Source: Mytilus californianus
Taxonomy: Eukaryota
DNA length: 64,000 bases
Direction: 5' to 3'
Assembly (NCBI RefSeq): GCF_021869535.1
Contig: NW_026262604.1
Span: 43,090,001 to 43,154,000 of the forward strand
Shown in pieces: positions 16,183 to 37,900 of the stretch. Numbering within the stretch: the stretch's first letter is position 1; each line of letters starts with the position of its first letter. The position numbers were made by a program, and so were the translations under genes. The notes beneath the pieces were generated by a model. That model saw only the letters and a program-made list of their open reading frames with translations. It was not told where the DNA came from and did not search any database.

Positions 16183-16873
16183 GGACTCTGAACCGCGATG
16201 GTCACGCTGATGTGCGATGGTTTGACGCTGACGTGCAATTGATTACATAAATCATATTTTTTTAATGTTTTTCATGTTTACATTTCAATGTAGAATTCAA
16301 TTGATTGTTAGAAGTAGCTTTTCGTTTTTTTTATGTAAAACATTGAGAGTTTAACCGTTTAATTTAAAACAGTCATTGTATTTCCAGTCCCCACTGAATG
16401 TAACTTTGTTGTGTACATTATACTTTGTAAATAGCTTAGACAAAACAAAAAGCAGCCGTTCATTTAATCGATCAGAAATTGACGCTTCTATTTTTTTAAA
16501 CGCAGTACTAATTGCAATGATAACAAAAAAGATGGGTTAGTTGTTAGTTGAAATGCAAATACGTCATAGTTAGTCAGAACGAAACAAATTAAGCGAAAAA
16601 TGTATACTGCTGTTATTAATAAAAACAAGGAATAAGATAGATCACCGATGTCTTTTAGTGCAACTGAAGAAAATGTTTAATGTTTGGTATTTATATACAA
16701 ACTTATAAAAAATCAAGCTCTCATGATAAATGAACATCTCTAAATTGTAAACTAGCCATCACACGTCTTATAGACCATCGAACATGAGCGAAAGGACCAT
16801 TGCACTTCGGCGTAGACGATCGCACTTCAGCGTGACCATCGCACTTCAGCGTCCCCATCGCACCTCTGAGTCA
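16183..16873. mobile_element. MITE-like TIR element with subterminal 19-bp repeats and probable TA TSD
   Basis: Left GACTCTGAACCGCGATGGTCACGCTGATGTGCGATGG; right end reverse-complements to GACTCAGAGGTGCGATGGGGACGCTGAAGTGCGATGGTCACGCTGAAG. TA flanks at 16181-82 and 16874-75. Confidence 0.7.
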
Positions 16874-16910: not shown

Positions 16911-17143
16911 TCATTGATTCATGTAAACCTCATCGTCTAGTTCATCCAATTCATTATATCCATGTTCCGTACAAATTTCGTAGTCACCAAAAAAGTGGGA
17001 TATATACTCAAATGTTATTCGAGCATCGGGGTCTTTAGACCAGCAATCTATGGCATGATCATAAATAGCTTCCGGACAACAATCAGGTTTTATGTGCCTT
17101 AAATCCCCTTTTATTCTGTTAAATATCTCTGGATCTTTCAAGC
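16911..17143 (-). CDS. Kinase last exon: subdomains X-XI and Tyr tail
   Basis: Acceptor TTTTTCAG|GC; CWSKDPDARITFEYI..FGDY...TEHGYNELDELDDEVYMNQ*. Confidence 0.92.
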
Positions 17144-20100
17144 CTGAAAAATAAACAAGAATATTAATATTACTAAATGATATTTTTTATGGCATGTTAG
17201 ATTAGTATTTGTTAAGATTAGATAAGATTAGAAAACGAATGTAAATCATAATTTTAACAATGTATTTAAACAAAATCTGCAATAACATTGGTTCAGATTA
17301 TTGATTTATATTGTTTTATTTCAGACAGGTAATTTGATATCTTGGTAACCTACGTTGTAAGGCGTTTTAAAAAAAGCGACCCTAAAATACAAATTAATGA
17401 ACAGTTGTTTGCTGTGCAAGCATATCGGGCACGCTTAGTTGTTTAAAAACAGTATATTACACTCTAATGATCATACATGTACCATCTGTGTTCAGGGTAT
17501 CATTCGCTTTCATTCACTAACCTATCGTGTATGTTGGCAATTATATTAAGACAATGCCCTCCTTGAAGTATATTAAAGAGCTTTCCGCGTCAGATCTTAT
17601 GCATCTAGAACTAAAAGACATTGAAAAAAATGTACAATTTGCCATAAAATGTGGGGAGCTATGAGATCAAGTATAATTTTTAATAACAGATGACACATTA
17701 TAGATGAACAGTATCCTGTTGTGAGTAAATTCATTTTAAGTCGGAATTTTGGCTTTCGCATTGTTCGTGAAAGGTTAATTCGTTCGATTCCTTTCTTAAG
17801 GTCCTTTTTTAAATGCTACTTGTCAATATAGAAAAAAAAAACTGATCAACCATATAAGGCTTAAAATTTGGTACGCCACGAGCGCTTTTTATCTCCAAAA
17901 AAAATCCTCAGTCAGGCTCGAATAAATTAAAGTTATCCAAACAGGTTTGACAAATATATTCAACATTATTACATACCATATGTTCTTCTGTTTATAATTA
18001 GTCGTAGGTTTATGAAGTTGTTGTTTTGACAGTTCAGTGAAATGCAATTCAATTTTCTTTGTTCTATTAAATTTGATATCAGATTAAGCATCTACTTCTC
18101 ATATGTTCAATGGTTTTTCGGATATTTTAATGTCAAATAAAATAAATGTTTTATGTTGAATTACTCGAAATACTGTTTGTCTACCACTAGTCATATATTG
18201 CCTTAGTCGTATTTGGTACAATTGTCGGAATTTGCGTTTTAAATGCTCTTCAACTTTGTTTGTGATGTGGCCTTCCAGTTTTTTTTTCGAGTGCCACTGA
18301 TGAGTTTCATGGAGAGTAGTACTTTTGATAAGCTTTTTCGTCATCATTTCGTTATCATGTAACTGAACTTTGGTGAAGGGTAGATTTTTGTGCTATTTTA
18401 CATGGTACGTTACCCACAAAAAAGTGTTTTGCAATTAGAAAGTGTATGCATTAAATCCTATAACAAAGATATATGAAAATAATATGCCTAAATACACTGC
18501 AATTTCTTACCAATTCAATACCGTTACCTTATTTGTTTTTTTTTACCAAGAACATATAATTCTTAATTTAATCTGTCATCTGGACACTTTACCTTCATAC
18601 GGTATTTTGCAATGTCCGAACACTTCCATTAAAAGTATTCCAAAAGACCAGACATCAGATTTGGTAGTCGCCTTTTCCCCTTCAATTATCTCTTGCGCTA
18701 ACCATCGAACCGGTGGAATAGTGCCTACATATAGTTAAATAACATGATATTTAAATGACAGCAACTAACCGTGTACTACTTTTAATCTTTGATCTTTGAC
18801 TACAATGGATTCAATAATATTGCGTTAAATTCAAGTTGGAATCAAAATTAATGGCTGCTTAATGTATCAGCCAACATATCGATTAATTGATTGGTTTTTA
18901 ACGCAAGTTTTAGCACTATTGGCTATAAGATGTCGGTAATTTTTTATTGAAGAAGGAAGCTGGGGTGCCCGGAGAAAATCACCAACATTTGGCAGGCAAA
19001 CTGATAATCCTTGTAAATTTGTATGGAGTCCAGGGATAATTTAATAGACATACGCAACTCATTGATATCCTGAAATGATAGTTCTATTGGTAATAGTAAA
19101 AGATCAATGATAAGTTGATATTGAAATTACAAGACCTCCAATCATGTCTTATTAACATATTAACAGCTTGTGTATAAATATAGGAAGATGTGGTATGAGT
19201 GCCAATGAGACAACTCTCCATCCATGTTACAATTTATAAAAGTAAACCATTATAGGTGCATGTATGATCAGATATATTTTTGATACTTACAATATTATAC
19301 CTATCATTTGATTTAATTAAAGCGTCACTTGTCACTTGTAAGTCTTTTGTAGACACGATGCGCATCTAGGGTGCAACATTATTATGAGCCTGGTATCTTT
19401 GATGAATTTTGATCATACTGGACGTGCCATGTATGCAGTAAACGGTCGTCAACTAGTGACTAAGCGGACATACAAATTAAACGCGTTCAATCGGATACAC
19501 ATTCGCAGTTCAATTTTAAACGTTATCATTCTGAATGCGGTAATTGGAGAAATCACACGCAATATGGGCAACCGGTGAATAAGTAGCTTTAGTTTATGTT
19601 ATGTTTTGTCAGCACCAAACTGTACCATGATTTTTATCGTCTTTATTGATATCAGAGATCTTATTATCAGTCAAAATGGTATAGCTATACAAAATTATGT
19701 AAACTAAAGACGTTTAGCATCAACAATAAGACGGTCTATGTTGTGACCTTTGCAATTTTATATTCAAGCTCGTGTAGATGTTACTTACGCCTTCGTTTGT
19801 GATCTATTGTATGGTCATTTGTCATATGCGCAAACTTGAACCCACAGACTTTTGGGTTCCAATTTGATCCAAATAATATATTGGCTGCTCTCAAATCGGA
19901 ATGAATGATCTCTCTGGTTCCTAGAAAATCCATTCCTTTTGCAATCTAAAATAAACCGTATAAAATGTAAAACGCATGGTTTGTTTTCTATATTGTTAGA
20001 ATTCTCTTTGGCCGTGAACGAATTCATGAATGCGGTAAAAGATGTTAAATCAACATAAAAAAGGTAGGTTTGTTTACATTAACCCCGAAAACTGTTATAT

Positions 20101-23100
20101 TCCGGCGATTTTTTTTGACAGACTATTAGCACAGACTTATTTAAGTTACTTACTAGTTTACATATATATTCCACCCCTGCATCGACATGACCAAGTGTGT
20201 TATGATAGTTCTCTGTTCAAGATAGTTTAGAATTTTAATGTAAGGCTTGCTGAGCTCTTGAAATATTTAAAATTTAAATATTAAGAGTGGAGAAAGATCG
20301 TAATATACGAGATATATATAGTGGTGGAATATGTTTCTCTAATGAGTTTTAGGCGATATCCAAACAAATTTTATCCTTTCTATACAAAGGTTTGAGGAAA
20401 GTTGTGTTCTTCTTATTATGACGTCATCAGGTATTGTCGCCTTTTTTTCATGACGCTACAATAGGAACTTCAGAAGAAATAAAAAAAAAAAGATTGACAT
20501 TATAATTGACATTCGACCAATTATTTGCCGAAAAACAAAGTTTTCTTTAGACATGAGAAAGATTTGTTTTCAAACCGATCATGAAAAGTGAAAATAGCAT
20601 GAAATTAGAGAAATATAGATTCCATCACTGCAACAAATGTGTTACGATATTTCTCCGCTCGAGACATTTAAATTTTAATATTCAAAGCTCGAATCTTGCC
20701 GAGCTTTTTGAATGATTATAATTTAGCTGTTGAGAGTGGAGAAATATCGTAATACACGAGTTAGTGGTGGAATATGTTTCTCTCATGATTTTTATCCTTC
20801 TTTTTCAAAGATTTGCAGAAAGTTGTGTTTTTATATGTGACGTCATCAGGCATGGTCGCCTAAGAAAATTTCACGTCATAATTAAATTTCGACAAATCAT
20901 TTGCCGAGAACAGATATTTCATTAGTTAGGAGAAATATTATTCTCACACCGATCAAGAAATTTGAAAATAGCACAAACATTAGAGAAATCCATATTCAAT
21001 TCTGCTGTTTACAAACATCGTGAAGTATCCGATAATGCGACCTCATCGACTTTATTTCACAGAACTTTATGTAAAACTTCTTACTCTAGTAATGTCCATA
21101 GGAACTCAGAAATGTTTGTGTATTACAACAACAAACGATTTAGTAGAAAAATACATCAGTCATTACAATATACATCTCGAGAAAATAATGAAGAACATAA
21201 ATATTGCACATTCTGTTTAAGGCGTCAACTACGTACTTGTTACCATAAATGAATGATCTGTGTAGTAATATAGACAAAGAAGACAATAGAAAATACGGTA
21301 AGATTGATAGAAAAAAACACGTCAAAACATAATTTGTTTGTAACAGAAAAAAAATATATACACTATTACTTTCACCTTAGATGTCATTTCAGTCATATTC
21401 CTCATAGATGTGTCCATTGATGTATGTTCATCTAATAAAATCTGATTTAAGCTATATTCCGTAAGATATTCCATGACTAGAGATACTGGATGTTGCTCTG
21501 TGCTTACTCCTATCATTTTGATGACGTTCTCGTGAGATGATCCCTTTAATATGTGAGCTTCTTTCAGAAAGGAGACGTGGTTATTATCAACGTTTTTCTT
21601 CACGGCTACTGTAGATCCTTGAAAAGTTGCTGTAAATAAGAAGTCAAAATGTTTAGCAGCTCCAATGATTTTTGGGATTTGATGGAATACAATTTGTGTG
21701 TGTGTGTGTGTGTGTGTGTTTAATTAGTAACTTGTATTGGAAATAATAGTTAAGTGCACATCATACAATGCATAAATTGATTGAGAAGAAGCGATTGTCT
21801 TTCAGATTCGGGAAAATAACTCTATATAGGTTTGAGATATTTTTTGATTTGACGTTTTCTGATATTAGTCTAAACAAAATTACTAGACAATCGCATTTCC
21901 AATAAACTGTCGTTCAGATTTTTCCAATTTAATTCAAAAATGTTAAAAATATATATTAGATTAGCACTAATCCAGGTTATAATATTCGGAAGCACGAAAT
22001 GTATAAAGTTTTCTTTCATTATGCATTGGCAAGAAAACTAAATTTACATTGTGTACTCCAGTTCTTGAAAATGTCTTTTTTAGAGAAAGTTAAATAAAAT
22101 AAAAAACGCAACGACTCTTTGAGATGACATAATAGAAATTGAATCTTAAATGACTTGATTGTTTAAAGTAACATGGGCTATTTCCAATTTTCTACAGCAA
22201 GATTGGTGACTTTCCTAAGTACATCCCCTTTTTTCACATTTTCTTTGTCAACATACTTCTTGTATGTTATCGATAGCTACCATCAACAAAATTGCAAGAA
22301 AATATGAGACCATGCGTGCCGCTACTTGGTTGGTGATTCCAGAGATTTGCTATTTAATATATATATTTGCATGCAACAATTGAAGGGTCTCCTGCGTGAC
22401 TTTGATGCAGACTGTTTGATGATCAGCTAAAATCTGATCAGCAGACTTAAATAAGTCATTGCATAAACATTTTAGTCATACATAAAGTTAAAAAAGTTGA
22501 CACTGTTTGGTAGATAATTATCCCCATGGTAATCATACCTCATTTCTGTATGTTCCTATTACAGATTAATGACTTTAATTTATTGTACGATTATTTCACA
22601 TGTTATATATTATTTTATTTAAACATTCCTTTCAATATGAACTGTTTTAAATTAACAATTGTTCGTTTAAACGTACCTTTCCAAACTCGCCCTGAATAAA
22701 CAGCCTTTACAAACCGATCAAGAGATGATCTTTTGATATCAGGAAACCATCCTACAGTGATACAATCGAACAGTAATTGGCCATGTTTTAAATGCACTAA
22801 TCACTGGCATTTTATTCAACAATATACTATGATTTAAAGATATAGATTTGAGAACTTTCACAGATAATAAAGCACTTTGCAATAAACTATGTGCGGAATG
22901 TGTGTTTCAACAAAATAATCATGGGATAATTATTCGATTCTACAAAAAAGAAATATTAGTATTAAAGCTGGTACATTTTTCCCTTTACAAACAACATTTC
23001 TAAACAATATTTCGGATGTACATTGATAAAATATTATGTATTTGTAGTGGATTTATGTTTTGATAAGGCAAACATCTGGGGGGAAAACACGCATAAATAA

Positions 23101-26100
23101 ACGTTACGTTTACTGAATTGGTCTCTGGAAAACCTGTTGACAAGTACAAAATCAAACCTAATCAATAAGTACAACAAAAACACATGCAGTTCATAGAGTT
23201 ATATAGAAGATCCAAAAGAGATTTTCTAACGCATTAGTCGCTGGTAAATTGCCAATTCCATAACATAAAAAAGAAGGACAAAAGGACAATAGTGTACAAC
23301 ACACAGAGTAGAAAGCTAAATACTGAGCAGTATAAACCATGCCAAATCTAATCATTATGCAAAAGAACCGTAATAATTAACAAATTTGAATTGTCAACCG
23401 TTTAATTGAAAAAAATTTCATAGAATGCAAATAATGATTTGCATTATATATATCTAGTCTGCATCCCAATATCCCACACATTAACCGTTCAATACACGTA
23501 CACGTCAACCAAATCCATGAATCCATGAAACGAAGACTATATTTTAAATATGCCTCAGATTTGTTTTTTAAACCATAGAGTTAGAATCCCGAACCTGGCA
23601 GCTGCACTCGACTCCAATCAATATTAACTTTGATTTTCAGTTTTCTGAACGAAAAGTCGGTTGTTTCTAACCAGTCCCTCCAGCTTCCTCTACAAATAGA
23701 AACTGACCACCACAAAATAGCACAATGGTGCTGAAAGTGGCACTTAACGGCAATCAGTTGATCAATTAATTGCCATGAAAGCTGTTGGAAAGACGTTTTT
23801 TTTCTTATGAAGATTCTTCTAGGCGACAGTAGTTTGCAGATGTTCGAATCTCGTGAATTGACTAAAAAAGGAACGAGACCTGATGTGTCGACAAGGTAAG
23901 CATCTTATGCTACGCATAAAAACCACTCTTTTAAAATGCCGTACGAAATCCAGACATTCGGAGAACATGAAATAATTTCAGTGTTATTTTAAATTTACTA
24001 GTGCTGGGTCGATACAACTGCCGGTAGACTATTATTCCCCAAGGCTACCGTCTACTCACTAGTCAGAATTTGTAATAAACGTTGATAATGAGGAAATTGT
24101 TATGAAACTTAAGGTACAAGACACTCAAACAAATTTAACGGAAGATGAATTTGGCTATATATTTTGAACCTTTATGGTCATACAGCATTTTTTCGCGTGT
24201 TCAAATCTTATGATCAGTGTCGTTCTTAGTGAAAGTAATCCAAGGAATTTTTTTTTCGGAAACACTAAGTATATTCGACTGTACGAATGGGAAATAACTG
24301 TCATAGTCCTATCTTGGTACAGCCTTGTTCCGGAGAAATGGTAAGTAAATCGTGGTCTTAACAATAGTGTCATTTGGAAAAATGAAATCACACACTTAAG
24401 GGCATACGATACAGTTTTGATCACACGGTGATTTTGTGACGAAAATTTGCATACTATTTTTAACCTAGTCAATTCAAATATGTAATAAAAATATACCTTC
24501 ATGTTCTATTTTTAGAGATAAATTGGGTCGAAATTTTAGACATTTGCTCAAAGTTTTTTTTTTCGACATTTCTAACCTTTGAACGGACACACCTAACTCT
24601 TTTGTTTCAAAAGATAACCACAAGCGGATTTGTGTAAGAACATTTGGAATATCGTCTAAACATAAATATACCATACGTTTGTGAAAAAAATCGGTGATTT
24701 CTTCATAAAAAGTGATACAAATAATCGTCATAAATAATCAAGTCATTAAAAAAAAAAGGATCCATGTACTCATTTTCTAGCTAATGATTAAAATCTGTCG
24801 AAAATGCATCTTTTCCCGATATTTCAACGTTTGACGACGCGAAAAATAACATTTTACGTTAGAAACGTTATTATCTCTCCTGTGACTGTATCGTATGGCC
24901 TTTAAGTGTTTCGTTACATTGGTCATGATGGTATAATGTGTTTTGATTGTGTATTTTATACATACCGGCCGAAGTTTTTGTTTTAGGTTCTGTACATGCA
25001 GATTTTGGATCTGAAAATAAAAAAAATATTTCTATAGGGAATGGATATATTTTGAGTCATTGTCATATGGTAGAATCATTCGCTGATATGTTTTCGTTGA
25101 TTTGTTATAAAGTTTACCTTAGTTTTACACTAGTAGTATGTGCTTGTGAACATAGATAAGAATGTTCAATCTGCGTATAAAAGGAAAAAAAAATTATCTA
25201 ACTCCAAGTAATTTTCCAAAAAGGGGGAAATGCAGAAAAAAACTGTCAAAATCAAACATTATACTTTGTCAAGTAACTGAATGAATCAGAAACAACTGTC
25301 ATTTTTTTTGTCTTGGCAAAGGGATATTCCGAAGAAAATGATAGATTAAACCTGGTTTTATAGCTAGCTAGACCTCACACTATTCTGAAAGTATCGTGGT
25401 GAGTAAACCAAACTCACATAATATGTTAATGGGAAAATAATTGGGTTCAAACCGCGCCAAAACTGAAAACATACATCATAAACACATAACACACCGACTA
25501 AAAAAATCAAACAAGCCTACAAATAAATGTCAAAAAGACTTATAATTCAGCGAAGATACACAACTGTTAAATCAAAAATACCCATGTATTTATTATTAAA
25601 TTTCGAATAAACTTTATTTTTATTTTCTCACCTAAGTACTGTGATGTGATGTGCTGTTTCGGGATATTTATTCCTTTGTTGCATTCAGAATTTTGACCGT
25701 GTTCATTTTCTTGACCTTCTTTATGCTTGGAAACAATTTCTTCTATTTTAACGGCAATTGATCCAAGTTTCTGAATACGAATGATTTTTGTATTGGCTAA
25801 TTTGATATCGAATTGCTGCAATTTAGCCTTAGTTGTCTCAAACCTCTTTTTGATACTAGACAACTCCTTGATCATATTTCCTCTAAGTCCAAATTTATTA
25901 TTTGTAAAATCGTAATTTTCTACAGATGCAAGATGTTGCAGAAACTCGTCCAAAGAATTTTGAATATCAAGAAGTTCTATTTTCTGGGTATTGTATGACC
26001 CTTTGCATATGTCTATTTCAGATAATAATTTCCCCTTAAGCTCAGACTCAAGCTTCAAAACTGTACACTCAATTTCTTGCTTTACTTCTGATATTGCATC

Positions 26101-26452
26101 AATAACTTCATTTTCTTGAACTGTGAGGTTTTGGTAGTTGTGTTCATTTAACTCTACCAATTCATGTACTGTGTTTTTTACCTCTGTACATTCATGTGCA
26201 ATTTCTTTGTACCACGAAGATGTTTGTAGAAATTTCTCTGTACAATCAGGACCTTGACCTTTAATTCCGTAAACCTCGTAACCTGTACTTGAAAAATTCA
26301 CCTCATGTTGTAACGTAAACTTGTTACGCTTATGTGCTTCTGCACAAGCCATGCACAACGGCTCTGAGCACTCAGTACACCAGGCAGCTGTACTGTTGTG
26401 TAAACTTCCTCGTTTGCACGACTCGCATAGTGGTGGAACTACCAGATGATAG
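16911..26452 (-). CDS. B-box/coiled-coil protein fused to a Src-like tyrosine pseudokinase (at least 556 aa; start exon unresolved)
   Basis: Exons 26452-25632, 22751-22677, 21629-21376, 19945-19789, 18724-18593 and 17143-16911 are all open with GT-AG. Phases 1,1,0,1,1 are compatible. Joining the first exon to the kinase exons is an inference from strand, phase and the absence of other coding sequence between them. Confidence 0.75.
18593..18724 (-). CDS. Kinase exon: subdomains VIII-IX (PVRWLAQE, KSDVWSFGILLME, PYE)
   Basis: Acceptor TATGTAG|GC, donor GAAG|GTAAAG, 132 nt. Confidence 0.92.
18885..19030 (-). mobile_element. Degenerate SINE fragment (same family as 5532-5798)
   Basis: GGAAGCTGGGGTGCCCGGAGAAAATCACC matches the reverse complement of the SINE core. 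Confidence 0.7.
19789..19945 (-). CDS. Kinase exon: subdomains VI-VII (IAKGMDFL, HSDLRAAN, KVCGFKFAH)
   Basis: Acceptor TTTTAG|ATT, donor C|GTAAGT, 157 nt. Confidence 0.92.
20250..21000. repeat. Duplicated fold-back element: direct repeat plus central palindrome at 20643-20751
   Basis: GAGTGGAGAAA.ATCGTAATA.ACGAG...AGTGGTGGAATATGTTTCTCT and later blocks occur twice, about 450 bp apart. Arms of about 50 bp flank an AATCTTGC loop. Confidence 0.75.
21376..21629 (-). CDS. Kinase exon: subdomains II-V (VAVK, FLKEA, HENVIK, LVMEY)
   Basis: Acceptor TTTACAG|CA, donor AAG|GTGAAA (an in-frame GTAATA lies 6 nt further on). Confidence 0.9.
22677..22751 (-). CDS. Kinase exon: linker and degenerate Gly-rich loop (WFPDIKRSSLDRFVKAVYSGRVWK)
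   Basis: Acceptor CTGTAG|GA, donor AAAG|GTACGT; aligns with Src-type WEIPRESL...FGEVW. Confidence 0.8.
23575..23765 (+). mobile_element. Degenerate SINE copy
   Basis: TGCACTCGACTCCAATC, CAGCTTCCTCTACAAATAGAAACTGACC and GGTGCTGAAAGTGGC are shared with the intact SINEs. Confidence 0.7.
24400..24901. mobile_element. Non-autonomous DNA transposon with TTAA TSD (Kolobok/piggyBac-like MITE)
   Basis: TTAA|GGGCATACGATACAGT ... ACTGTATCGTATGGCCT|TTAA. Confidence 0.8.
25632..26452 (-). CDS. Exon: B-box type 1 zinc finger + long coiled coil (RING-less TRIM-like)
   Basis: CESC-x12-CTEC-x4-CMAC-x3-H-x8-H followed by about 170 aa of heptad-rich helix. Acceptor AATTCAG|C (alternative at 26438), donor TTAG|GTGAGA. 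Confidence 0.88.
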
Positions 26453-28420
26453 CTGAATTAAGAAATTGGTTAACGTCAATGTATTTTAAAACTTAACAGT
26501 TGATGTAATTTGTATGATACGAACATATGCACAAAGTGTTATTTGTTTGTATTTTCTGTATTCGTTTTGCTGTCACTTTCTTAACTCTTAAAATACGATT
26601 AATGATATATTTATTTATATATTATGGCAGCTATATGTTCACATAAAATGGTCACATATCAGCATACATTTTTACAGTTTTATTTATCGTTTTATTCATA
26701 GATAACATGCCTATAAATATTTGATTTATCTGTCTAAAAACCTTTAAAGTGTTTTTTTTTGTCTTCAAAGTGACGAAATATCAATGCAGTTGAATGTTAA
26801 TTAAAGCCCTTCCATGATGTGTTACATGACAATTTTGTTTCCAAAAACAAAACATATTGAGGATAACAATTTAAACAAACTTTGTAGATATTTCTGTAAG
26901 TGTTTAATCTTTTATTGAGTATTAATTAAGTTATTCAATATTCTTTCAGGATTGTGAATTACGCTTTTCTTTTCTTATTTTTATTAACTATCATCCATAC
27001 AGCATGTGTAATACTACTCTGATTACTTCTAGATATAGCTGATACATCGTAATAGTGGGATAGACGTAATGTGAAAACGAATAGTAATGAACATAAGCCC
27101 CCCCCCCACCAAATGAGGAATATGACAAAATAGTTCAGCCAACGGGTAACATGTGATAGTTATATGATTATAATTAATCTATAATTCAACTTTCTTGTCT
27201 CGAATTTTCAATCATAAATAATATCTATGAAGGTAACAACGAACATAAATTGAAAATAACAATGAAGAAATGAATATAACCTTAAAGCTTTAACATGTTT
27301 AAATATGAATTTATGATGATTCTTCCCTCTACTGTCTTTAAAATACAAAGAAAGAAAACTCAATCACAGTGTACCGTCATTATTTAAATGCTCCGAAGAT
27401 GAATTTACAATATATTAATTCTGCTACAAATGAAAAGCAAAAAAAAAAAATTAAAAAAATTCACTAATTGCACCACTTGAAGTAAATCATGGAATCTTAA
27501 AAAAACGACATAAAATATTTCATTAATTAAAACCTAGCGCTGCAATAATTGAAACAAATAAAACCGTACAGCTAGAACCTTAACCTCGTGATAGTCATCA
27601 TTTCTTTAACTACTTATTTATTCAAATAAAAAATCAATTAGAATAATCTAATGCACATATACAGATACAAGCCAACAACAAAGTAAAGTCTGAAAATACA
27701 GTTTGATGAATACTGAAGAAATGGTTTGTCTTTATTGTGGAAAAAGTATTCATTACCTGTTGATTGACTCATGCAATGCTACTACTTGTTTTGCATTTTC
27801 AAGACAATACCGGTATGATGGTTACAGCATAAAAGCATAAAGAAATATCAAATTACATTTTTTTAAAGAATCCACATGCTTATAAGCATTCGTTTCTTTG
27901 TGTTTAAATAATATTTCTAATTGATTACACTCGCGATACAAAGTAATGAAATAACGGTTAAAAATTCAAAACAGTTCACGTATGCACACAAGTTCGTTTT
28001 ATTGTAGAAATTAAATGACCTCCCTATAAACATTACACAGTTATTTTAAAGTCTTACACAGTTCCTTTGTTCTACATTGATTGTATCTGGTGTACCTTGA
28101 TTATATTAATAACACATTTTCCTACTTATATAGATATTTAAATCTTGCAATAGATACAAATAAATATAAAGTTAAGGTTTATGAACCATTTTGTAGCCAT
28201 ATCAATTACAAAATTTTCAAAGGGATACAATATCAAAATAGCAAAGATAATAAATATTAGAAATGTGCCAAAGGACAACCTCTTTCAAAGCAACATTTCT
28301 TATTGTTTTATTGCATTTGATAGACAATTGGGATTTTGTGGCAATTAAGCTTTTTGCAGAAAATCTACAGACTTTAGTACAGAGATTTTCGTTATAAAAT
28401 TTTAAACATAGATTACTCAC

Positions 28421-28505
28421 TTGTCTGTACATCATGTGCTAGTGTTTGTTGTTGAGAACAAATCCTGAACAACCTTTACATTCCAAAAAACCTCGTGCTG
28501 AGTCA
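28421..28505 (-). promoter_or_regulatory. Candidate first exon and promoter of the B-box kinase gene (AP-1 motif)
   Basis: Minus-strand donor CAA|GTGAGT at 28420 and TGAGTCA at 28499-28505. A second candidate micro-exon ATGAGTCAATCAACAG|GTAATG lies at 27772-27757. Speculative. Confidence 0.25.
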
Positions 28506-29272
28506 CTAAAGTCGAGCGCATTCTAGAAGGTGTACTTGAATTGGTCCATATTTATATTTGTTTTAACCAATATCTTAATTTAGAAACTTGTTTTAAGGAA
28601 ATCATTACTAGCAGTGCATGCAATAATCCTCTATCTCAAAGCACCAAATTATCAAATATAAGAGTACAAGGGGAAACAAAAAAATGGCACATAATCCTTA
28701 ATCCGAATAAACCTGTCCAATCAAAGGACAATAGGATATGTTATGTTAATGATATGTAGTTGAGTGAAATGTCCTTATATGAACATGATGAAACGGGAAA
28801 TTGTATTGTTAAAAGACACTATACACAGATAAAGAAAAGAAATGTTTGACTTAAACACATAATAAAAAAGCAATTAAAATCAGCATCATTTTAATTAGCT
28901 AATCTTTTTGAATCAGGAAACAGTTACAGCATAAATTAATTCTCATCTGGCATTTTTGCCAAAAATTAATTGATACCATGCAACAAGTTTATTTGGTAGA
29001 AACATAAGGTAAGTAGATCTTGACACTCTAAGCATTTCATTTTCTCTGTCAGATTGTCTCTATATGTTATGGTATCTAGATAAAAGACAGTTAATGCATT
29101 TCACCATTATGTTCTATATTTAGCAAGAGCAGCCATGTTTTCTGACTGAACGGAAAAAAAGAACATACTTCATATTGCAAACCTTAAGAATCATTCAACC
29201 TAAGTCTAGTTGAAATCAGTTTAGTTGGCTGTTAAAATATTTTTGTAATTTATAGGTCATCACAATAGGTAA

Positions 29273-31529
29273 CACTACAAACCAGTAAAAGTCTGAAATG
29301 GCCTATATCTGTACTCGACTGTACTGATTTTTACTCGACCAGTCTGAATTGGTCTGAATTTTACTCGACATTACTCGACCCCAGTCTTAACCATACTCGA
29401 CCGTACTGATTTGTACTTGACCCTTATCTTTGCCATTGAAAATAGTCTGAACTATTACTCGACCAGTCTGAGACAGTCTTAACCCATTCTCGACCTGTAC
29501 TCGACCAATTTGTTCAGTCTAAACCATACTCGACCAAAGGTCTGAACAATACTCGACCAGTCTGAACCATACTCGACCAGTCTGAATTGGTCTGAATTTT
29601 ACTCGACATTACTCGACCCCAGTCTTAACCATACTCGACCGTACTGATTTGTACTTGATCCTTATCTTTGCCATTGAAAATAGTCTGAACTATTACTCGA
29701 CCAGTCTGAAACAGTCTAAACCCATTCTCGACCTGTACTCGACCAATTTTTTCAGTCTAAACCATACTCGACCAAAGGTCTGAACAATACTCGACCAGTC
29801 TGAACCATACTTGACCAAAACACCTATACTTTTTTTTAATTTTAGCTGTTAAAATTAATTTCTTTTTTTCTGACATGACAACAGCCACAATAAAATAAAG
29901 ATATATATAAAAACATATTTTTACATCCTTACATCATGTACATGATTCTCAGATTTATCAAATATAGATAGTTAAATTAAATAATCTTATATAATAATTT
30001 AACTATATTAATTTTAAAGTTTTAGAGTTTTGTTAAAAAAAGATTTTCTTTTTACTAAAAACCACACCTTTACTGAGGGTAATAAAACCTTATTGAGGTG
30101 CTTCTTGTCTGGCATGTGTTTTTTTTTAACTTCATTTTCCTAAATTCCAAAAGAAAAACTATATAGGTTTCATGGTTACCTACACTAGTTATATAATTAT
30201 CTTTTTAATAAGGTAACAACAGCCAAAAAATCACTGAAATTGTTTAACCTTATATTAGAAATATATCTATTCTTATTATAATTTGGGATACATTATATAT
30301 AATATATATCAAAAATGGATAAAAAAATTAAAGAAATAGATAAAATTTTTCTTCTGATTAGTGGTAAAGTATAAAGTAATACCTCCTGCTTAGGGCAAAC
30401 TCATTAAAAAGATCACACCTGGTCAGAGAGTATTAATTTCTAATTAACATTCATTAAAAATTGCCATATCCTGTAAAACTTAAATCGCAAGGCCTTTTGA
30501 TTTCACTTGATAAGTAATACACGAGTTTAAGAAAAAAAGGGCTTTCTTTTTACCTGTAAAACACACATGTACTGAGGTAAATAAACCTTATTAAAGTGTT
30601 TCTTGTATGCCATGTCTTTAATTTTGACAAAAGTTATTTAAATTTAATTGAAATTAATTTTTTTCTGCAACTTTGGAACACATTTCCTTTTTTAAATGGT
30701 TATCAAGGATTGCTATGGAAGTTCTATTATCATGATTATATTAAATTCTTGGTTTTACAAAATAAGGTGTTATTTTTTAAATTTATTAAGTTGCTTTATA
30801 TACTATTTTAAATATATTTTAATAAAAAAAATGTTCACTGCATTATTAACTAAACTCATCTGACACCATAAATCTATACAAGGCTTAAGTAAATGATGAA
30901 AATTGTCCAGTAACCATAAAATATATCTGAAACGTTCAAAAATTTGAATAACATTGAAAATATTAGTCACAATTCAGTTTTGAGATTATTTGATCAGCTT
31001 GTTTTATTTTTATTTTAAAGGTGATATATATATATATATATATATGTAAGTCTTGATAAATATGGTGTTGAATTTATATTATGTTTATTGTGAAATTTTG
31101 GTTTCAATGCCATATTGAATACATTTTAAATTTCAAATTGTTGTTCAAATTTCTAGCCAGGGGAAATAGCTGTTAAAACAGTTCCTAAATTGATGAAAAA
31201 CAATAGATAGATACAAAATTTAGGTCTAGGTTGGTTAAGACTTAGTCGAGTATGTTTCAGACTAGGTCGAGTATGGTTCAGACTAGGTCGAGTATGGTTC
31301 AGACTAGGTCGAGCATGGTTCAGACTAGGTCGAGCATGGTTCAGACGAAAATAAAATGGTTAAGTACTGGTCGAGTAAAGGTCGAGTACAAGTTCAGACT
31401 ATTAAGTGTGGTTCAGACTACAGTCGAGCATTATCAAGTAAATTTCAGACCAATTCAGACTGGTCGAAGAAAAATCAGTACAGTCGAGTACAAATATAGG
31501 CCATTTCAGACTTTTACTGGTTTGTAGTG
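29273..31529. mobile_element. Non-autonomous CACTA/EnSpm-like element with subterminal repeat arrays
   Basis: Ends are CACTA...TAGTG with an inverted repeat of about 110 bp and many ACTCGACC motifs. There is an internal duplication of about 238 bp at the left end and about five 21-bp repeats (AGGTCGAGYATGGTTCAGACT) at the right end. No ORF; TSD unclear (TAA/TGA). Confidence 0.8.
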
Positions 31530-31890
31530 TGAGGAAACTTCGGAATTTGACTGTACAATAGTATTTATAAGTAATTTCACTTTATTATTTTGCGATAGTT
31601 GTGTTCCATAAATCTTTTTTTTTATTCTGAGTCGATACATTTTCAACACTATCCTGCACCCTTCTCATCTGATGTATACACATATAAAATACATTAGAAA
31701 TACGATGTTCAAGTATAAAGAAAGTACACACATACTGTTTAACAAAAAGCTTAATGGTAACCTTTACAAACATGGAGTATATTCCTCATATTGATTAACA
31801 ATTAACAAGTTTGGGACCTCAGTGTAGAAGGTAGGGTATATATATTTATCTATTTGTTTCCGGTCTTTAATACAAAAGCCTTTTTTGGAG

Positions 31891-31919
31891 GAGGGGGGGG
31901 GGGGGTGGGGGGGGGGGGG
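31891..31919 (+). repeat. Poly-G tract
   Basis: Seen directly. Confidence 0.9.
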
Positions 31920-34716
31920 CGTTTTTTGATACTAAAGACATAAAGGCAAACACATGAAAGAAGGGATGAATCATTTGCATTCATGATTTATTTTTAAAAT
32001 CTTTCATATTTAAACTCTATAAATATCTCCTTTAATCAATCATCATGCTTCAAGTGCAGCTATGAAAGATTGGAAACACATCATAGTCCCAATTATTATA
32101 CTGAAAACTCAGCAGTTAAATTGTTGTGCAACCTACTGTATGTTGTAATGTGCTGATAGAAGGCAGCATCTTCAGTGAAAGTCGATCATCCCATTAGGTA
32201 CAATGGATTCATTTACATTTGTGAGATATTAAATTTTGTAGATTTCGTTTGTTAATGTAAACCATGAATTCAGATGTTCACCGAAGTATATATTTTCTAT
32301 TGGCTTGTTTACAGACTTAGCAAAACCACGAAATCAAAATCAAACGAAAAAATATGTCTTACTTAATCAAAAAAATAAATGAATCCACAGTAATTAAAAA
32401 GTAAACACTTTGTTATTAAATGATTCATATTCAAGAGAGGTGAAAGATACCAAAGGGACATCCAAATCCTCATACATTGCTATGTTTGCCAACTTTAATC
32501 TTGTGCTCTGTTCAGGTTAATCATATTAACATAGAATAGATCAATATTTAACTACTTATCACATTTATATGATGTTTATTGTTGAAGGCCGTACGGCTGC
32601 CTATACTTGCTTACTTTAACTTCATTTGCATTTTGGTGGATAGTAGTTTCATTGTATTAACTGCTCCAAGAAAATGTTGTCTTTCTCTATATATTGCCTC
32701 CTCTCTATCAACCTGACAAACCAAGTCAACTGCATTGATGATAAAGGAATTCAACAGGATGCATGTTATTGGGAAAAAGATCAAGACATCAAAATAAACT
32801 AATATTTCAAGTTATGCTTTAATTTTTCTCAGATTATTGCCATATCTAATAAATCGCATAAGGAATTAAGTCTTGTGAAAGAACTTTTATTTAAAACTTT
32901 CCAATTCAGGTTGATCTGTTCCTTGTTTCGTCAATTTTCTTATCCTTTTGAAAGTACAGTTTTTTAATGCTAGTTATATATTGCTATTCATTTGATTTTT
33001 TTGAAAAGCAGAAATTTGTATGTTTTTTTGTCATCCTTAAAGACTTTATTTGGTTGACATAAAAGCATTGACTGCATTGTTCACTTTAATCTGAAAGTTT
33101 TCATGCAAAATTTCTATAATAATCGAATTGACGTTATAATATGGTCAATAAAACAAGACGGCAAACAATCCTGCATAGTATTCCAACTTTTTTCCACGTA
33201 CCTCTACCCTGCAGACGGACGGACGAGTTTGGGGATGAACGGACGTACATGTGAGGGGACCACTACCATATCTCTCGCAGCCATGAAAATTGGACAAAGA
33301 TCATCAGCTAGGCCATTGCCTTCTTTCGTTCAACATGTAATCCGTTTTTCCTTTACAATCGCATAAAACGGATAATCAAAGGAGAAATGTATAAAGCAAT
33401 GAATATGAAAAAATACTGTTTTTGTAGTTATTAAATTCATTCTATTATCTGAATACCTAAAAGTCTAACGACACCAGATTGTTTTATCTTAAACTAATCA
33501 AAATTTACAACTCAACATTCTTCGTTCGTTGAACATATAATCTTTTTGTCTAGATATAAAGACTAGAAAACATGGAAAAAAATGCTATTTAAACCCTCAA
33601 TAAACATCTTTAAAGCACAACTAATTGATATAGTTGAGATATCATTCTTGAAAACATTCAACATTTAATAAATTTAAGGGAAAATGACAAGAATTATCAA
33701 TCGACAGTATTTTCTTTAAATGATGGAAAAGATGACCTACATAATATAGTTAACTTGATATCATTATGTTTTGAAAATAAGAAAAACAAATATTTCACGT
33801 CATGTTCCCTTGAATTTAAAAAGGTTAAGATTCAATTTAAATAGTTACTAACTATGTATTCCTTAAAGTTCTATTTTCGTTTGAGGTTTATGACAGTTGT
33901 TCCTACATGAATTTCCTGTTCTTCCTCGTAAAACGTAAAACGTTATAAGAATGTTGATTTAAATGAATAAAAGTATAATTCAAATTCAAATTCAAAGTAT
34001 TATAGAGATCAATATCAAATTATATAAAAGCCCTTGTTATGAGATGGCATCTGTACGTCATCTGTACGTCAAAATTACTGCAAAACAATGGAAAGATGTA
34101 AAATTGGAAGAAATGTATTACTTTCACTTTTAAAAGCAAATAAAAACTTGTTGTTCATGATTAAAAGGTCTGCTACGCGTGTGGTAAACTTGCTAAATAT
34201 GGAACAGAGAGTTAAGGCTGCAAGCGAGTTGAAAGGCAATTTCATGATATATTTACTGTTGATTTAATCATTGTCGTGCTTACAGACTTCTTGTTGCTTT
34301 TGTGGACATATTATCATTGCGTACAAGCCTATATACAATCACCTTTACCCCTAAAAACCATAAAAATTGATATCATAGGAAAAAAACGAATTCACATTAT
34401 GTCAAAAGTATTATTGAGATGTCACTTGCCGATATAACAAAAATATTATAAAAAATATGACATTAACCTTTCTGTGTCCAGTCGTTTATTGTATTATTTT
34501 AAACCTGGCAATTGTTTTTGTTCAGATCCTTTTATAGCTTACTATAGACATTTATTTTACTCATTGTTATACGGTAGGAGAAAGATGTTTCCATCTTCAT
34601 CATTTGGTTTCCTTAGTTATGTCGTTTCATCGCCAGCCATATCAAATCTGAATTTTAAAAACAATTAACAAATCAAAAATCAAAGCAAATAAAAAAAAAA
34701 AAAAATACAATGTCGA

Positions 34717-34945
34717 TAATAATTAGAAAAAGTAAAAAGTACTTACGCATGTGAAAACGTTATTTAATTCAATCTATGCACCGCTGTATAACATCAATAA
34801 TAATTAGAAAAGGTACTCTCGCAAGTGACAACCTTTTTTTATTAAATCTATGCACCACTGTATAACATAGATAATAATTAGAAAAAAAAGTACTTACGCA
34901 TGTGACAACGTTATTTTATTTAATCTATGCGCCGCTGTACAACTA
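34717..34945. repeat. Three-copy minisatellite (unit about 72-81 bp)
   Basis: TAATAATTAGAAAA...TACTTACGCATGTGA.AAC...ATCTATGCACC.CTGTATAAC is repeated. Confidence 0.85.
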
Positions 34946-37900
34946 GGACATAAAAATTCATCACAAGATGGACAAAATGAAATTGCGTCAATGTTTTTGT
35001 TGATTCGCAAACATGATTGACAAAGTTTACATGGTAGATCCATTTTTGATCAAAGTAATGATCCTGTAATTATACACTCGCTTTGATGAGTCTTTATAAT
35101 GACCGCATTTGTACTGTTACTGCTGGAAACTTCGATATTTTTCCGTATTAAAGAAACACTGTTTCAAAATTCAAGGTCCAGGTTAACAAATGACATTATA
35201 TGATTCACTTGTACAATGTTGTATTTTTAGTTTTATTGATTGGAATTTAAATCCAATGAAAAATCATTGATATTCAAATCATTGCGTAATAGTTTAATTG
35301 GTAGCATACAGATAATGTACATTTAAACTTCCTGACTTGGACGTTGTAAACATGAATTACTTTAAGAGTATTAAATCATTAACTTTAAAGGCTGATATTC
35401 AACATTAGATCAGGAAAATCAAATAAGGAAAATAATGTTAGTGAGATATTGGAAAACACATATACTGATGTTTCACATAATACTGTCTCAAATTACAATA
35501 TATATAGAGTATGTGATTCTGTAGGGATTAACTGTCAAATTCAGTTTTACGGAAAAAAAATCAAATATGGGTTGATGATGAGAGGGTTTCAACATACGAT
35601 TTAAAACATAGACGTGGATCTCGGACTAAATACGCGTTTTAAAATGTTCCGAAAAATCCCAACCAATAATGTGTTTCAATGCCAAATCATAAACCTTTTC
35701 ATATATTTTCTAGTAATCGTATATAGAATAACAATCAGACTAGTCCTTTTTGGAAGAAACATATGTCTGGCGTACACAATTTTAATCCTGGTATTCATGG
35801 TGAGTGTATATTCAATTTTTGACAGCTTATGCAAAATAAATTTTCTAGGGATATGTTGTTTAACAAGCCTTTTAACTTAGATAAGAACAGTGTCAACTAG
35901 TTAATCATTATCAAATTATAAATCGTGTACGAATTAGAGAAAACATAGTTATCTAAGTTAACATGCATTCAGTTAATGCGAGTACTCTTAGATCGGTATC
36001 ATGTGTCTTTTGCATTCATGTTTGTTGCTTCTTGTGCTGTGTGCCAATCTGACGGGTCAGCCATTTTCCCCGTCTTTTTATAGTTTATTCTTATGATGTG
36101 ATGTTTCACAAGGGTTTCGGGAAGGTTTGATGGTCACAACCATTTCAACCCACCATATTATATATTTGCCTGTAATTCAGTGAGTGTCCTGGGTTGCGTT
36201 TATCAAATATGTATTTCATCTATTGTAATGTTTTCAATGATGCGGTGTTATTATTTAAGTGTTGTCACATTTTGTCACGTCGGGGCCTTTTATAACTCAA
36301 TATCCGGTATCGGGTTAAGTCAATGCTGAAGGTCGTACGGTGACCTGCAGTTGCTTACATCCACGGCAGTTGGTCTCTGATAGAAAGATGCCTCATTGTC
36401 AACCATATCAAATTTCCTTATTTTAACGGCACTTCTGGTATTTGAATAAGAAGAGACCCCATGCAATACACAATGCATGTAATCGCTTAACAGTTCAAAC
36501 ATGATAGAAAGTACGCCATCTATGTAACCATCCACATTATTTACAAAGATTGCAGATATACAAAGACATTATATAAAACATACTAATAACTCCTGCTGTA
36601 TCTAAAAAGTGAAATCACAAAAATACTGAACTCCGAGGAAAATTCAAAAAGGAAAGTCCCTAATCAAATGGCAAATCAAAGCTCAAACACATCAAACGAA
36701 TGGATAACAACTGTCATATTCTAAAATAGTATCAGAGTTTATACATCATCCTTTTACATGTAGCATGTAATTACCAGCATGTCTTTCTGTCAGTAATAAC
36801 GGTCAATTGAACCTTGGTGTATTTTTTTTCAGACAACATGCTTTTCAAAAAAGGAACTTGCTGTACAGATGAAAGTTAAAGATAACATACATGTGGAACT
36901 GCCTGGTCGAATAATTGCCGCCTTGCACGTCAATAATTTATCAGCTCAGTTCTTGAGCTTATTGATTTTGTTAAATTGAACCAAACTGACACCGAGTAAT
37001 TAATTACGATTCCATTTTTGTATAATCATGATAATTATGTTTGAGGCAAAATAAAACATAACTTATATTGTGAAAATTGCAGCTACGTGTAATGTCCATT
37101 TAACAAATCTGAGTTCCATGTGTTAATTAAATAAAGGTAAATGTCTATAAAAATTGTTTAGTAGCAGGATTGAATTTTTTATTCCTACAAAACTTTTATG
37201 TTATTTATAAATGTACCTTTACTGATTCAGGTTTGGTAATACTTTTATTTTGTAATTTTCTTTTTATCCCTTATGCATATATATAAACTAAACGAAAACA
37301 TTATCAATTAATACATTTCAAACTGATCAGTCTAAAACGAACTGACAATGACATGGCAACATAACTCTTTTAAAGAACTTTAGTCTTATTGGAGGGTTGT
37401 CTCATTAGTAATCATACCACATCTCATATCAAATAAAATAACAGACATTGTCACACATAATTGTATTATAATTAAAAGATAACAAACAAACTATAAATTA
37501 TAAAATTTAGTCTTGTAAAAGAACTGAAATCTATTACTTAAATTCGAGTGGAACAAAATACCAACAACGTATTCAAAACTGAATTGCATGTGTGTATGTT
37601 TTCTGGTTGAAGACCTTTGAAATCGATACACATTATTTTGGTTAATGTCTCTTTGTTAATTATGGTATCTTATATTGTTATCATCGTCATTACTTCATCA
37701 TATTTATGTTTAAAGTAAACGATTATTTTCTCATTCAAACTGTGTGAATGATCGACCAACGTCCGTTTTCAAAGACAAAGAAACTGTGAAATGTCTATCA
37801 TCTCTTCACGATAAGTATGTTGTTGTTCCTGTAGACAAAGCTTCAAATAATATTGTCTTTGTGTGTAAATCGTACTACTACCTACGAGTGTCTTGTAAAA

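Follow-up and report, generated by a model that had tools for sequence, protein, structure and literature searches.

To our knowledge, few pseudokinases derive from cytoplasmic Src-type kinases. Src-family kinases carry their catalytic loop in the form DLRAAN, and a pseudokinase can be defined from sequence as a kinase domain in which at least one of three residues is missing, namely the VAIK lysine, the HRD aspartate or the DFG aspartate. MLKL belongs to the TKL group, joins a four-helix-bundle killer domain to its pseudokinase and has no catalytic-loop aspartate. In STRADalpha, which has GLR instead of DFG, the arginine substitutes for the cation, and ATP binds in the absence of metal (PMC4718504). 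Here we compare with these systems a gene of the mussel Mytilus californianus, which lies in a window of 64,000 nucleotides (the whole stretch of DNA that was analysed) and encodes, in order, two B-boxes, a putative coiled coil, a linker, a pseudokinase and a Src-like tail. The gene has eight coding exons on the minus strand (35043-16911, 620 codons), and the five that form the kinase part (22751-16911) make up a complete tyrosine-kinase domain:

E1, 34898..35043, minus strand: start codon ATG at 35043-35041 and first B-box; ends in phase 2 at the donor GC/GTAAGT
E2, 25632..26452, minus strand: second B-box, long helical (putative coiled-coil) region and variable acidic linker, in open frame
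Exon X, 24966..25010, minus strand: 45-nt linker exon, phase 1-1, encoding DPKSACTEPKTKTSA
K1, 22677..22751, minus strand: kinase-domain start with its Trp, and degenerate Gly-rich loop KAVYSG
K2, 21376..21629, minus strand: VAVK lysine (21600-21598), alphaC glutamate, hinge and alphaD-alphaE; Pfam PF07714, 1.8e-11
K3, 19789..19945, minus strand: catalytic loop HSDLRAAN, GFK for DFG and first half of the activation loop, which lacks Tyr; Pfam match
K4, 18593..18724, minus strand: P+1 loop with WLAQE and alphaEF-alphaF; Pfam 7.9e-14
K5, 16911..17143, minus strand: end of the C-lobe and Src-like alphaI/tail; stop codon 16913-16911

Every exon is bordered by GT-AG and the phases fit together; in the reference haplotype all eight are open with intact splice sites. 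The preliminary description, which placed the gene at 22751-16911, had the kinase exons right, but the gene begins at 35043 and its B-box/coiled-coil N-terminus had been left unused. E1 was located by tblastx with the upstream region of a paralogue and by sequence inspection, and exon X by means of the RefSeq isoform P0001. Spliced RNA contigs from runs X1 and X2 cover E2 and show the joints between K2 and K1 (21629 to 22677), K1 and X (22750 to 24965) and X and E2 (25010 to 25632), with K2 itself also present; of the loose contig ends, that at 26452 continues with window-type sequence from the end of E1, and that at 21376 with window-type sequence from the start of K3. The gene is real and transcribed, with spliced RNA linking E1, E2, X, K1, K2 and K3 of the window copy. 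A direct splice from E2 to K1, which the phases would allow, is ruled out because both the RNA contigs and the RefSeq isoform contain exon X; likewise, the RNA joint at 21629 rules out an alternative K2 acceptor at 21618. A sample of about 6% of the raw M. californianus RNA run X14 contained no exon reads, which says nothing either way.

The RefSeq proteins of M. californianus LOC127721854 contain K1-K5 of the window exactly: P0001 holds all five peptides, including those of K1 and K3 as exact substrings and that of K2 at residues 364-447 (100% match), together with all four predicted junction residues. None of the RefSeq models uses E1, E2 or X of the window copy. Two tandem paralogues are handled there as one locus with mixed isoforms, a merging that needs correction ahead of expression studies. 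An exact-protein contig look-up with P0001 gave no match. The gene is already in public databases under generic names, and no account of its architecture was found in the literature searched.

It belongs to a tandem family confined to Mytilus. An intact paralogue with the same exon order lies about 215 kb away (43.32-43.35 Mb), and the same array holds two further copies with stops. M. coruscus and M. edulis have full-length models of the same architecture, and the M. trossulus model is partial and covers the kinase part; the M. coruscus orthologue is open over the seven exons located (E2-K5; E1 was not located). VAVKK, the alphaC glutamate, HSDLRAxN and GF[K/R]FAH are invariant in the family, as are WLAQE and the tail in the full-length models; HSD and GF[K/R] do not vary, the M. 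trossulus form being GFR. The N-terminal half is fast-evolving.

The motifs first read from the window were all recovered in the minus-strand gene model: the degenerate Gly-rich loop KAVYSG (22707-22690), VAVK with its lysine (21609-21598), the alphaC glutamate (21561-21559), HSD for HRD with catalytic Asp and Asn kept (HSDLRAAN, 19903-19880), GFK for DFG (19843-19835), AQE for APE (18698-18690) and an activation loop that has no tyrosine between GFK and WLAQE. Exons were searched singly, and each of K2-K5 matches Pfam PF07714; P0001, in which the kinase part does not differ from K1-K5 of the window, served as a stand-in for the whole domain and covers profile positions 15-256 of 258 with 194 bits. 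NCBIfam gave generic bacterial kinase matches only. Where a competent kinase would have GxGxxG, HRD, DFG and an activation-loop tyrosine, this domain has KAVYSG, HSD, GFK and no tyrosine. It falls under the definition of a pseudokinase through the Mg-binding DFG aspartate, which is glycine in all family members, while the VAIK lysine and the HRD aspartate are kept. From these residues we infer that the kinase domain in the window is catalytically dead.

The kept Lys, Glu, catalytic Asp and Asn leave room for unusual activity. One could accordingly picture an atypical active kinase, in which the Lys or Arg at DFG+2 stands in for the metal and phosphotransfer is cation-independent as in CASK, which is active without a DFG aspartate (PMC4718504). 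The beta3 lysine, alphaC glutamate and catalytic-loop Asp and Asn are invariant in every family member, and K3, the catalytic-loop exon, and K4 are under strong purifying selection, as such an enzyme would lead one to expect. However, the best past predictors of activity are a preserved Gly-rich loop along with VAIK, both present in CASK (PMC4718504), whereas the mussel family has throughout kept only one of the three P-loop glycines, shows a changed APE and has no tyrosine in the activation loop. We consider an active enzyme quite improbable.

Several lines of evidence support descent of the kinase domain from the Src family, without proving it. In a search of solved structures with the whole domain, the top 58 matches were all Src-family, with alignment through the tail tyrosine, and the best solved matches of single exons were Itk/Hck/Lck for K4 and Fyn/Src/Hck, including the tail, for K5. 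The catalytic loop HSDLRAAN has the DLRAAN also present in the canonical mussel Src gene (C1:139.99 Mb), and a tyrosine follows alphaI in a tail whose TEHGY, conserved across the family, aligns with the tails of Hck and Src. With a family profile, SH3-SH2-kinase proteins reach 150-171 bits, Fes up to 132 and receptor kinases up to 125; one row that groups with Fes in the tree has 149 bits. Alignments that run past profile position 256 to the tail (258-271) are confined to SH3-SH2-kinase proteins, which make up 15 of the 20 listed; those of Fes and most receptor kinases end at 252-258. The introns, as had been proposed, lie at Src positions: all four agree in position and phase with the gene at C1:86.33 Mb, and so do the three that were examined in the gene at C1:139.99 Mb. 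In the other tyrosine-kinase genes of the genome that were compared, a set outside which Abl, Tec and Csk fall, introns lie elsewhere or are absent. One detail of the proposal did not survive: the border between K3 and K4 had been given as /GxK, but its split codon is Arg (C/GC) and the border reads /RTIPP.

The kinase domain was also examined with two likelihood trees and with five AU tests. The trees do not recover the family, which has a stem of about 1.5-1.6 changes per column, within the Src clade; one puts it outside Src+Fes (support 94/93, with a long-branch warning). The domain might therefore stem from another tyrosine-kinase lineage, with Src-like motifs that are convergent or ancestral, and the AU tests, which reject none of the Src, Fes (p 0.18) and receptor-kinase (p 0.27) groupings, allow this, as does exon K2, for which Fes, Btk and Abl are the best-scoring matches when it is searched on its own. 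Nevertheless, such an origin seems very doubtful in view of the exclusively Src-family ranking of the whole domain, the restriction of tail alignment to SH3-SH2-kinase proteins among those listed, the DLRAAN loop and the intron agreement, and in the first data set the likelihood is higher for a tree constrained to join the family with Src. The preliminary description of a Src derivative stands on these lines of evidence, but not on the likelihood trees, which leave the long branch unplaced.

The N-terminal region is built differently from that of a Src kinase. Pfam finds neither SH2 nor SH3, and neither the SH3-SH2-kinase order nor an N-terminal membrane-anchor motif is present. The protein starts with MDLPCK and continues into a first B-box of the form C-x2-C-x12-C-x2-C-x4-C-x2-C-x3-H-x8-H, which scores just below the Pfam cut-offs (PF22586, 26.8 vs 27 bits; PF00643, 22.5 vs 24.1); RefSeq relatives do match PF00643/PF22586. 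The second B-box has a weak Pfam match, and its best solved structure is B-box 1 of KAP1/TRIM28 (E 7.8e-7). No RING is found by Pfam, and the conserved start codon directly precedes the first B-box in all orthologues. An AlphaFold2 model of P0001 with a seven-sequence family alignment was unusable (mean pLDDT 33.5); this low-confidence model has a single helix over residues 128-224 and, with the character of the sequence, suggests a coiled coil.

The kinase domain is under strong long-term purifying selection (dN/dS 0.10 against M. edulis, p 9e-19; 0.16 against the intact paralogue, p 2e-12), and K4 differs from the paralogue by 13 synonymous and no nonsynonymous changes. The preliminary description held the gene to be maintained, which is true of the family (kinase dN/dS 0.10-0.16) but is called into question for the window copy by its terminal branch and by one stop-bearing RNA contig. 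That branch carries 14 nonsynonymous and 2 synonymous changes, indistinguishable from neutrality (p 0.86), an RNA contig of run X1 has a nonsense allele at 25713 (E2), and 19 of the 24 listed variants are nonsynonymous. The window copy could thus be a redundant duplicate that is transcribed, unselected and drifting towards a pseudogene, as the two array copies with stops already have, with the family function perhaps carried by the paralogue at 43.32-43.35 Mb; the absence of its E1, E2 and X from RefSeq isoforms fits this as well. We think such a fate rather unlikely, however, since the reference haplotype is intact throughout, its transcripts are correctly spliced in two runs and the M. coruscus orthologue is also open over E2-K5. 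Moreover, the terminal-branch counts are small, segregating mildly harmful variants inflate such ratios, and several residues specific to the reference are polymorphic, with the alternative alleles being those of the family consensus.

On balance, we think it probable that this member of the Mytilus tandem family is a scaffold without Mg-dependent phosphotransfer, combining a B-box/helical protein with a Src-descended pseudokinase and tail. The 620-residue protein would be cytoplasmic and dimeric or oligomeric, with the B-box/coiled-coil part gathering pseudokinase domains. These, together with two conserved tail tyrosines encoded in K5 (16958-16956, YNEL; 16925-16923, YMNQ), would dock real kinases or SH2 proteins; the first tail motif, Y[D/N]E[V/L], resembles a Src SH2 ligand and the second, YxN, the Grb2 type. 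The tail was also considered as an ITAM, which is ruled out by its second motif, Yx[N/C]Q rather than YxxL/I. If the protein is a scaffold, exon shuffling together with a loss of metal binding would have made an oligomeric docking module out of an autoinhibited signalling enzyme, with the Src tail kept, and the family would offer a natural tyrosine-kinase test case for cation-free nucleotide binding of the GLR type.

The same parts would also suit an innate-immune sensor or adaptor, a TRIM-like scaffold with a Src-mimicking pseudokinase, to which we give little credence. Here the RING-less B-box/coiled-coil part would form dimers or lattices displaying the pseudokinase, either as a decoy for pathogen factors aimed at host Src kinases or as a dock whose tails, phosphorylated by Csk or Src, engage the SH2 domains of real Src kinases and so switch them on. 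The dead array copies, the null allele and the fast N-terminal half would then reflect birth-and-death evolution within a family of immune genes.

Among known systems, the scaffold that we favour shares with TRIM/RBCC proteins, especially the TIF1 group (TRIM28/KAP1), two tandem B-boxes, a long helical region and a variable C-terminal domain; unlike them it has a kinase fold as its C-terminal module and no RING, because of which no E3 ligase activity is predicted. In the literature searched on B-box/TRIM proteins we found no B-box/coiled-coil protein with a C-terminal kinase fold. Other molluscan Src-like domains have likewise lost the DFG aspartate. Two genes at C13:69.91-70.02 Mb, whose N-termini were not found, have HKD and GFH, but in K4 and K5 they resemble the canonical C1 gene far more than the B-box family. 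The first kinase domain of the Batillaria model P0130 has HRDLRASN and GFE; kinship with it is ruled out by the tree, in which it joins the second domain of the same model within the Src clade, so that its loss is an independent one. MLKL is similar in having glycine at the DFG aspartate position (GFE) and a helical N-terminal region before the pseudokinase. This likeness had been judged probably convergent, and we agree that it is convergent: the mussel family shows no sequence kinship with MLKL, its best matches are tyrosine kinases, and instead of a four-helix-bundle executioner before a TKL-type pseudokinase it has a B-box/helical N-terminus. As a sequence motif, GF[K/R] is closer to the GLR of STRADalpha, both being Gly-hydrophobic-basic triplets in place of DFG, and it is because of this likeness that we infer a scaffold whose pseudokinase may, by analogy, bind ATP cation-free; STRADalpha, however, is of the STE20-like Ser/Thr kinase group, with MO25 and LKB1 as partners. 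The best sequence match remains the Src family (Src, Fyn, Hck and Lck, with the mussel genes at C1:139.99 Mb and C1:86.33 Mb; 32-35% identity), which has in common with the mussel protein DLRAAN, the Trp at the domain start, alphaI with a tail tyrosine at the position of Src Tyr527, and four introns, whereas the mussel protein has lost the DFG aspartate, HRD arginine, two P-loop glycines, APE proline and activation-loop tyrosine, and in place of SH4, SH3 and SH2 carries two B-boxes and a helical region.

The gene that carries the kinase-like domain lies on the minus strand and extends beyond the kinase exons to which the preliminary description was confined. Only about 31% of the window is G+C, and it contains no runs of N; between 22800 and 16911 five open minus-strand segments each have either a PF07714 match or the expected tyrosine-kinase motifs. 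Joining these segments (exons K1-K5) at GT-AG borders with compatible phases yields a complete kinase domain, and together with the upstream exons E1, E2 and X they make eight exons totalling 1860 nt, or 620 codons.

Features of the gene, with the basis for each in brackets
35043-34898, minus strand: E1, first coding exon, with the ATG and a B-box (comparison with paralogue)
26452-25632, minus strand: E2, 821 nt, B-box and long helical region (sequence)
25010-24966, minus strand: exon X, 45-nt linker (gene model)
22707-22690, minus strand: Gly-rich loop, KAVYSG (sequence reading)
21609-21598, minus strand: VAVK (sequence reading)
21561-21559, minus strand: alphaC Glu (sequence reading)
19903-19880, minus strand: catalytic loop, HSDLRAAN (sequence reading)
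19843-19835, minus strand: GFK in place of DFG (sequence reading)
18698-18690, minus strand: AQE part of WLAQE (sequence reading)
16958-16956 and 16925-16923, minus strand: two tail Tyr codons (sequence reading)
16913-16911, minus strand: stop codon (sequence reading)

Reading the minus strand bears out all the motif states first described, namely KAVYSG, VAVK, HSDLRAAN, GFK and AQE in open exons and an activation loop without Tyr. One detail of the described intron borders differs: the codon split between K3 and K4 encodes Arg rather than Gly.

We aligned contigs from two probable M. californianus RNA runs (X1 and X2) over 21300-26500. These contigs skip exactly 21630-22676, approximately 22751-24964, and 25011-25631, with GT..AG ends on each, and at their loose ends they show the end of the window copy's own E1 and a window-type K3 start. 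Because the contigs match its junctions and carry its own loose ends, the window copy is transcribed and is spliced E1-E2-X-K1-K2-K3 as modelled. K4 and K5 lie outside the aligned stretch, and both are used by RefSeq models. A raw RNA run, of which about 6% was sampled, gave no exon reads, a result uninformative in either direction.

Several tandem repeats accompany the gene. A period-74 repeat in three copies (34715-34943) duplicates the last ~40 nt of E1 and its GTAAGT donor, and intron 1 thus carries extra copies of the donor site. The same intron holds two copies of a 238-bp unit at 97% identity (29332-29817) and six copies of a related 21-bp unit (31221-31346). Just downstream of the stop codon are 3.6 copies of a 19-bp unit (16795-16863), which is probably a dispersed repeat, since a similar stretch is found upstream of the paralogue.

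Exon K2 matches at 100% identity the RefSeq protein XP_052084623.1 (isoform X5 of "uncharacterized protein LOC127721854", Mytilus californianus). The K1-K5 peptides of the window copy all occur in this protein, as do the four residues predicted at their junctions. We used this protein as a stand-in for the whole kinase domain and searched the window exons singly. Its N-terminal 325 residues, however, derive from a paralogue ~215 kb upstream. More generally, isoforms X1-X6 of LOC127721854 combine exons of two tandem paralogues ~215 kb apart (window 16911-35043, and 43.320-43.348 Mb of the same contig), with X5 taking its N-terminal exons from the upstream copy and its kinase exons from the window copy. 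In none of the six isoforms do the E1, E2 or X of the window copy appear, despite RNA contigs that link these exons to K1-K3. The mixed isoforms are likely an annotation merge; alternatively, they could be read-through chimeras.

The upstream paralogue is the one further intact copy on this chromosome, with identical exon order and kinase exons 86-100% identical in amino acids; two other copies there are degraded and carry stops. More degraded fragments, including a B-box/helical exon with many stops and K5-like pieces, occur on the plus strand at 45.61-45.63 Mb, 2.5 Mb from the array. M. coruscus and M. edulis have full-length models combining a B-box with PK_Tyr, and M. trossulus a partial one. 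All seven alignment rows share VAVKK, the alphaC Glu, HSDLRAxN and GF[K/R]FAH without variation; among the full-length models, WLAQE and the tail ICTEHGY[N/D]E[L/V]...Yx[N/C]Q likewise do not vary. Outside Mytilus, an exhaustive protein search with exon K2 gave no match above 36% identity. The genes already have public database entries with generic labels ("Src-like", "Src64B-like", "uncharacterized"), and our literature search found no published description of this Mytilus family or of any B-box/coiled-coil protein with a kinase-fold C-terminus.

The preliminary description regarded the pseudokinase as maintained, and this is clearly true of the family. Nei-Gojobori counts summed exon by exon give the following values for the kinase part.

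Nonsynonymous (N) and synonymous (S) divergence of the window kinase exons
Versus intact paralogue: dN 0.048, dS 0.310, ratio 0.16, N:S 31:42, p 2e-12
Versus M. edulis: dN 0.041, dS 0.392, ratio 0.10, N:S 26.5:51.5, p 9e-19

K4 differs from the paralogue by 13 synonymous and no nonsynonymous changes, and the N-terminal half evolves faster than the kinase part (ratio 0.33-0.44). For the window copy itself, however, recent constraint is not visible. Divergence from its M. coruscus orthologue is very small (dS 0.037), with changes too few to judge; when polarised, these give 14 N:2 S for the branch of the window copy and 12 N:7 S for that of M. coruscus. Variants in the RNA runs relative to the window copy comprise 19 nonsynonymous and five synonymous differences. 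One of these, G>A at 25713 (CAA to TAA on the minus strand), places a premature stop in E2 in the spliced contig of run X1 only, being absent from run X2 and a further run, X12; all 11 E2 differences listed for the X1 contig change the protein (10 missense and the stop).

Several observations agree with the earlier proposal of a Src derivative. Of solved structures, the 58 that best match XP_052084623.1 belong without exception to Hck, Src, Lck or Fyn (162-152 bits), with alignments reaching the tail tyrosine, and Fyn and Src also rank first for K5 alone. Scored with a family profile, SH3-SH2-kinase proteins reach 150-171 bits, Fes proteins no more than 132 and receptor kinases no more than 125, although one unnamed protein that groups with Fes in trees reaches 149. 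Only SH3-SH2-kinase proteins (15 of the 20 listed) have alignments that run past profile position 256 into the tail. DLRAAN is the catalytic-loop form typical of the Src family, and is carried by the canonical mussel Src gene (contig C1, 139.99 Mb). All four kinase introns share position and phase with a canonical SH3-SH2-kinase gene (C1, 86.33 Mb), as do the three examined in the Src gene, whereas many other tyrosine-kinase genes of this genome are intronless or interrupted elsewhere. Kinase-domain phylogeny, suggested earlier as a check, was less favorable: likelihood trees either fail to resolve the family or place it outside Src+Fes, on a stem of ~1.5 changes per column that warns of long-branch effects, and AU tests rejected no alternative placement. 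Descent of the kinase domain from a Src-type gene is likely, yet short of proof.

Other degenerate kinases were encountered. Two Src-like genes with very long introns (contig C13, 69.91-70.02 Mb) have HKDLRAAK or HKDLRADN, GFH for DFG and an intact APE, with no SH2 or SH3 exons found within 130 kb. A Batillaria attramentaria protein (P0130) begins with a Src-like domain bearing HRDLRASN and GFE, followed by SH3, SH2, a second kinase domain and a caspase-family match. Because its first domain groups with its own second domain in the tree, its loss of the DFG Asp would be independent of the Mytilus family, unless the gene model is a merger. Three further database proteins (P0003, P0005 and P0006; 1300-2900 residues) carry 5-10 tyrosine-kinase-like domains in tandem, and in many of these the catalytic motifs are degenerate.

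The second of the two B-boxes matches B-box 1 of KAP1/TRIM28. Together with the helical region, a putative coiled coil, the B-boxes would hold pseudokinase modules in pairs or arrays, and the conserved tail would provide two SH2-type docking tyrosines. Without the DFG Asp the protein counts, by sequence, as a pseudokinase, and of the three P-loop glycines it keeps just one. A review (PMC4718504) gives VAIK combined with an intact Gly-rich loop as the best past predictors of kinase activity; CASK, which lacks the DFG Asp but keeps both, is active. In STRADalpha, which has GLR for DFG, this Arg (with a His) replaces the cation and ATP is bound without metal (PMC4718504). The preliminary description noted a likeness, probably convergent, to MLKL with its GFE, but the invariant GF[K/R] follows the Gly-hydrophobic-basic pattern of GLR, and STRADalpha is therefore the closer analogue. 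From this likeness and the lost motifs we infer a non-catalytic module that, like STRADalpha, may bind nucleotide without a cation.
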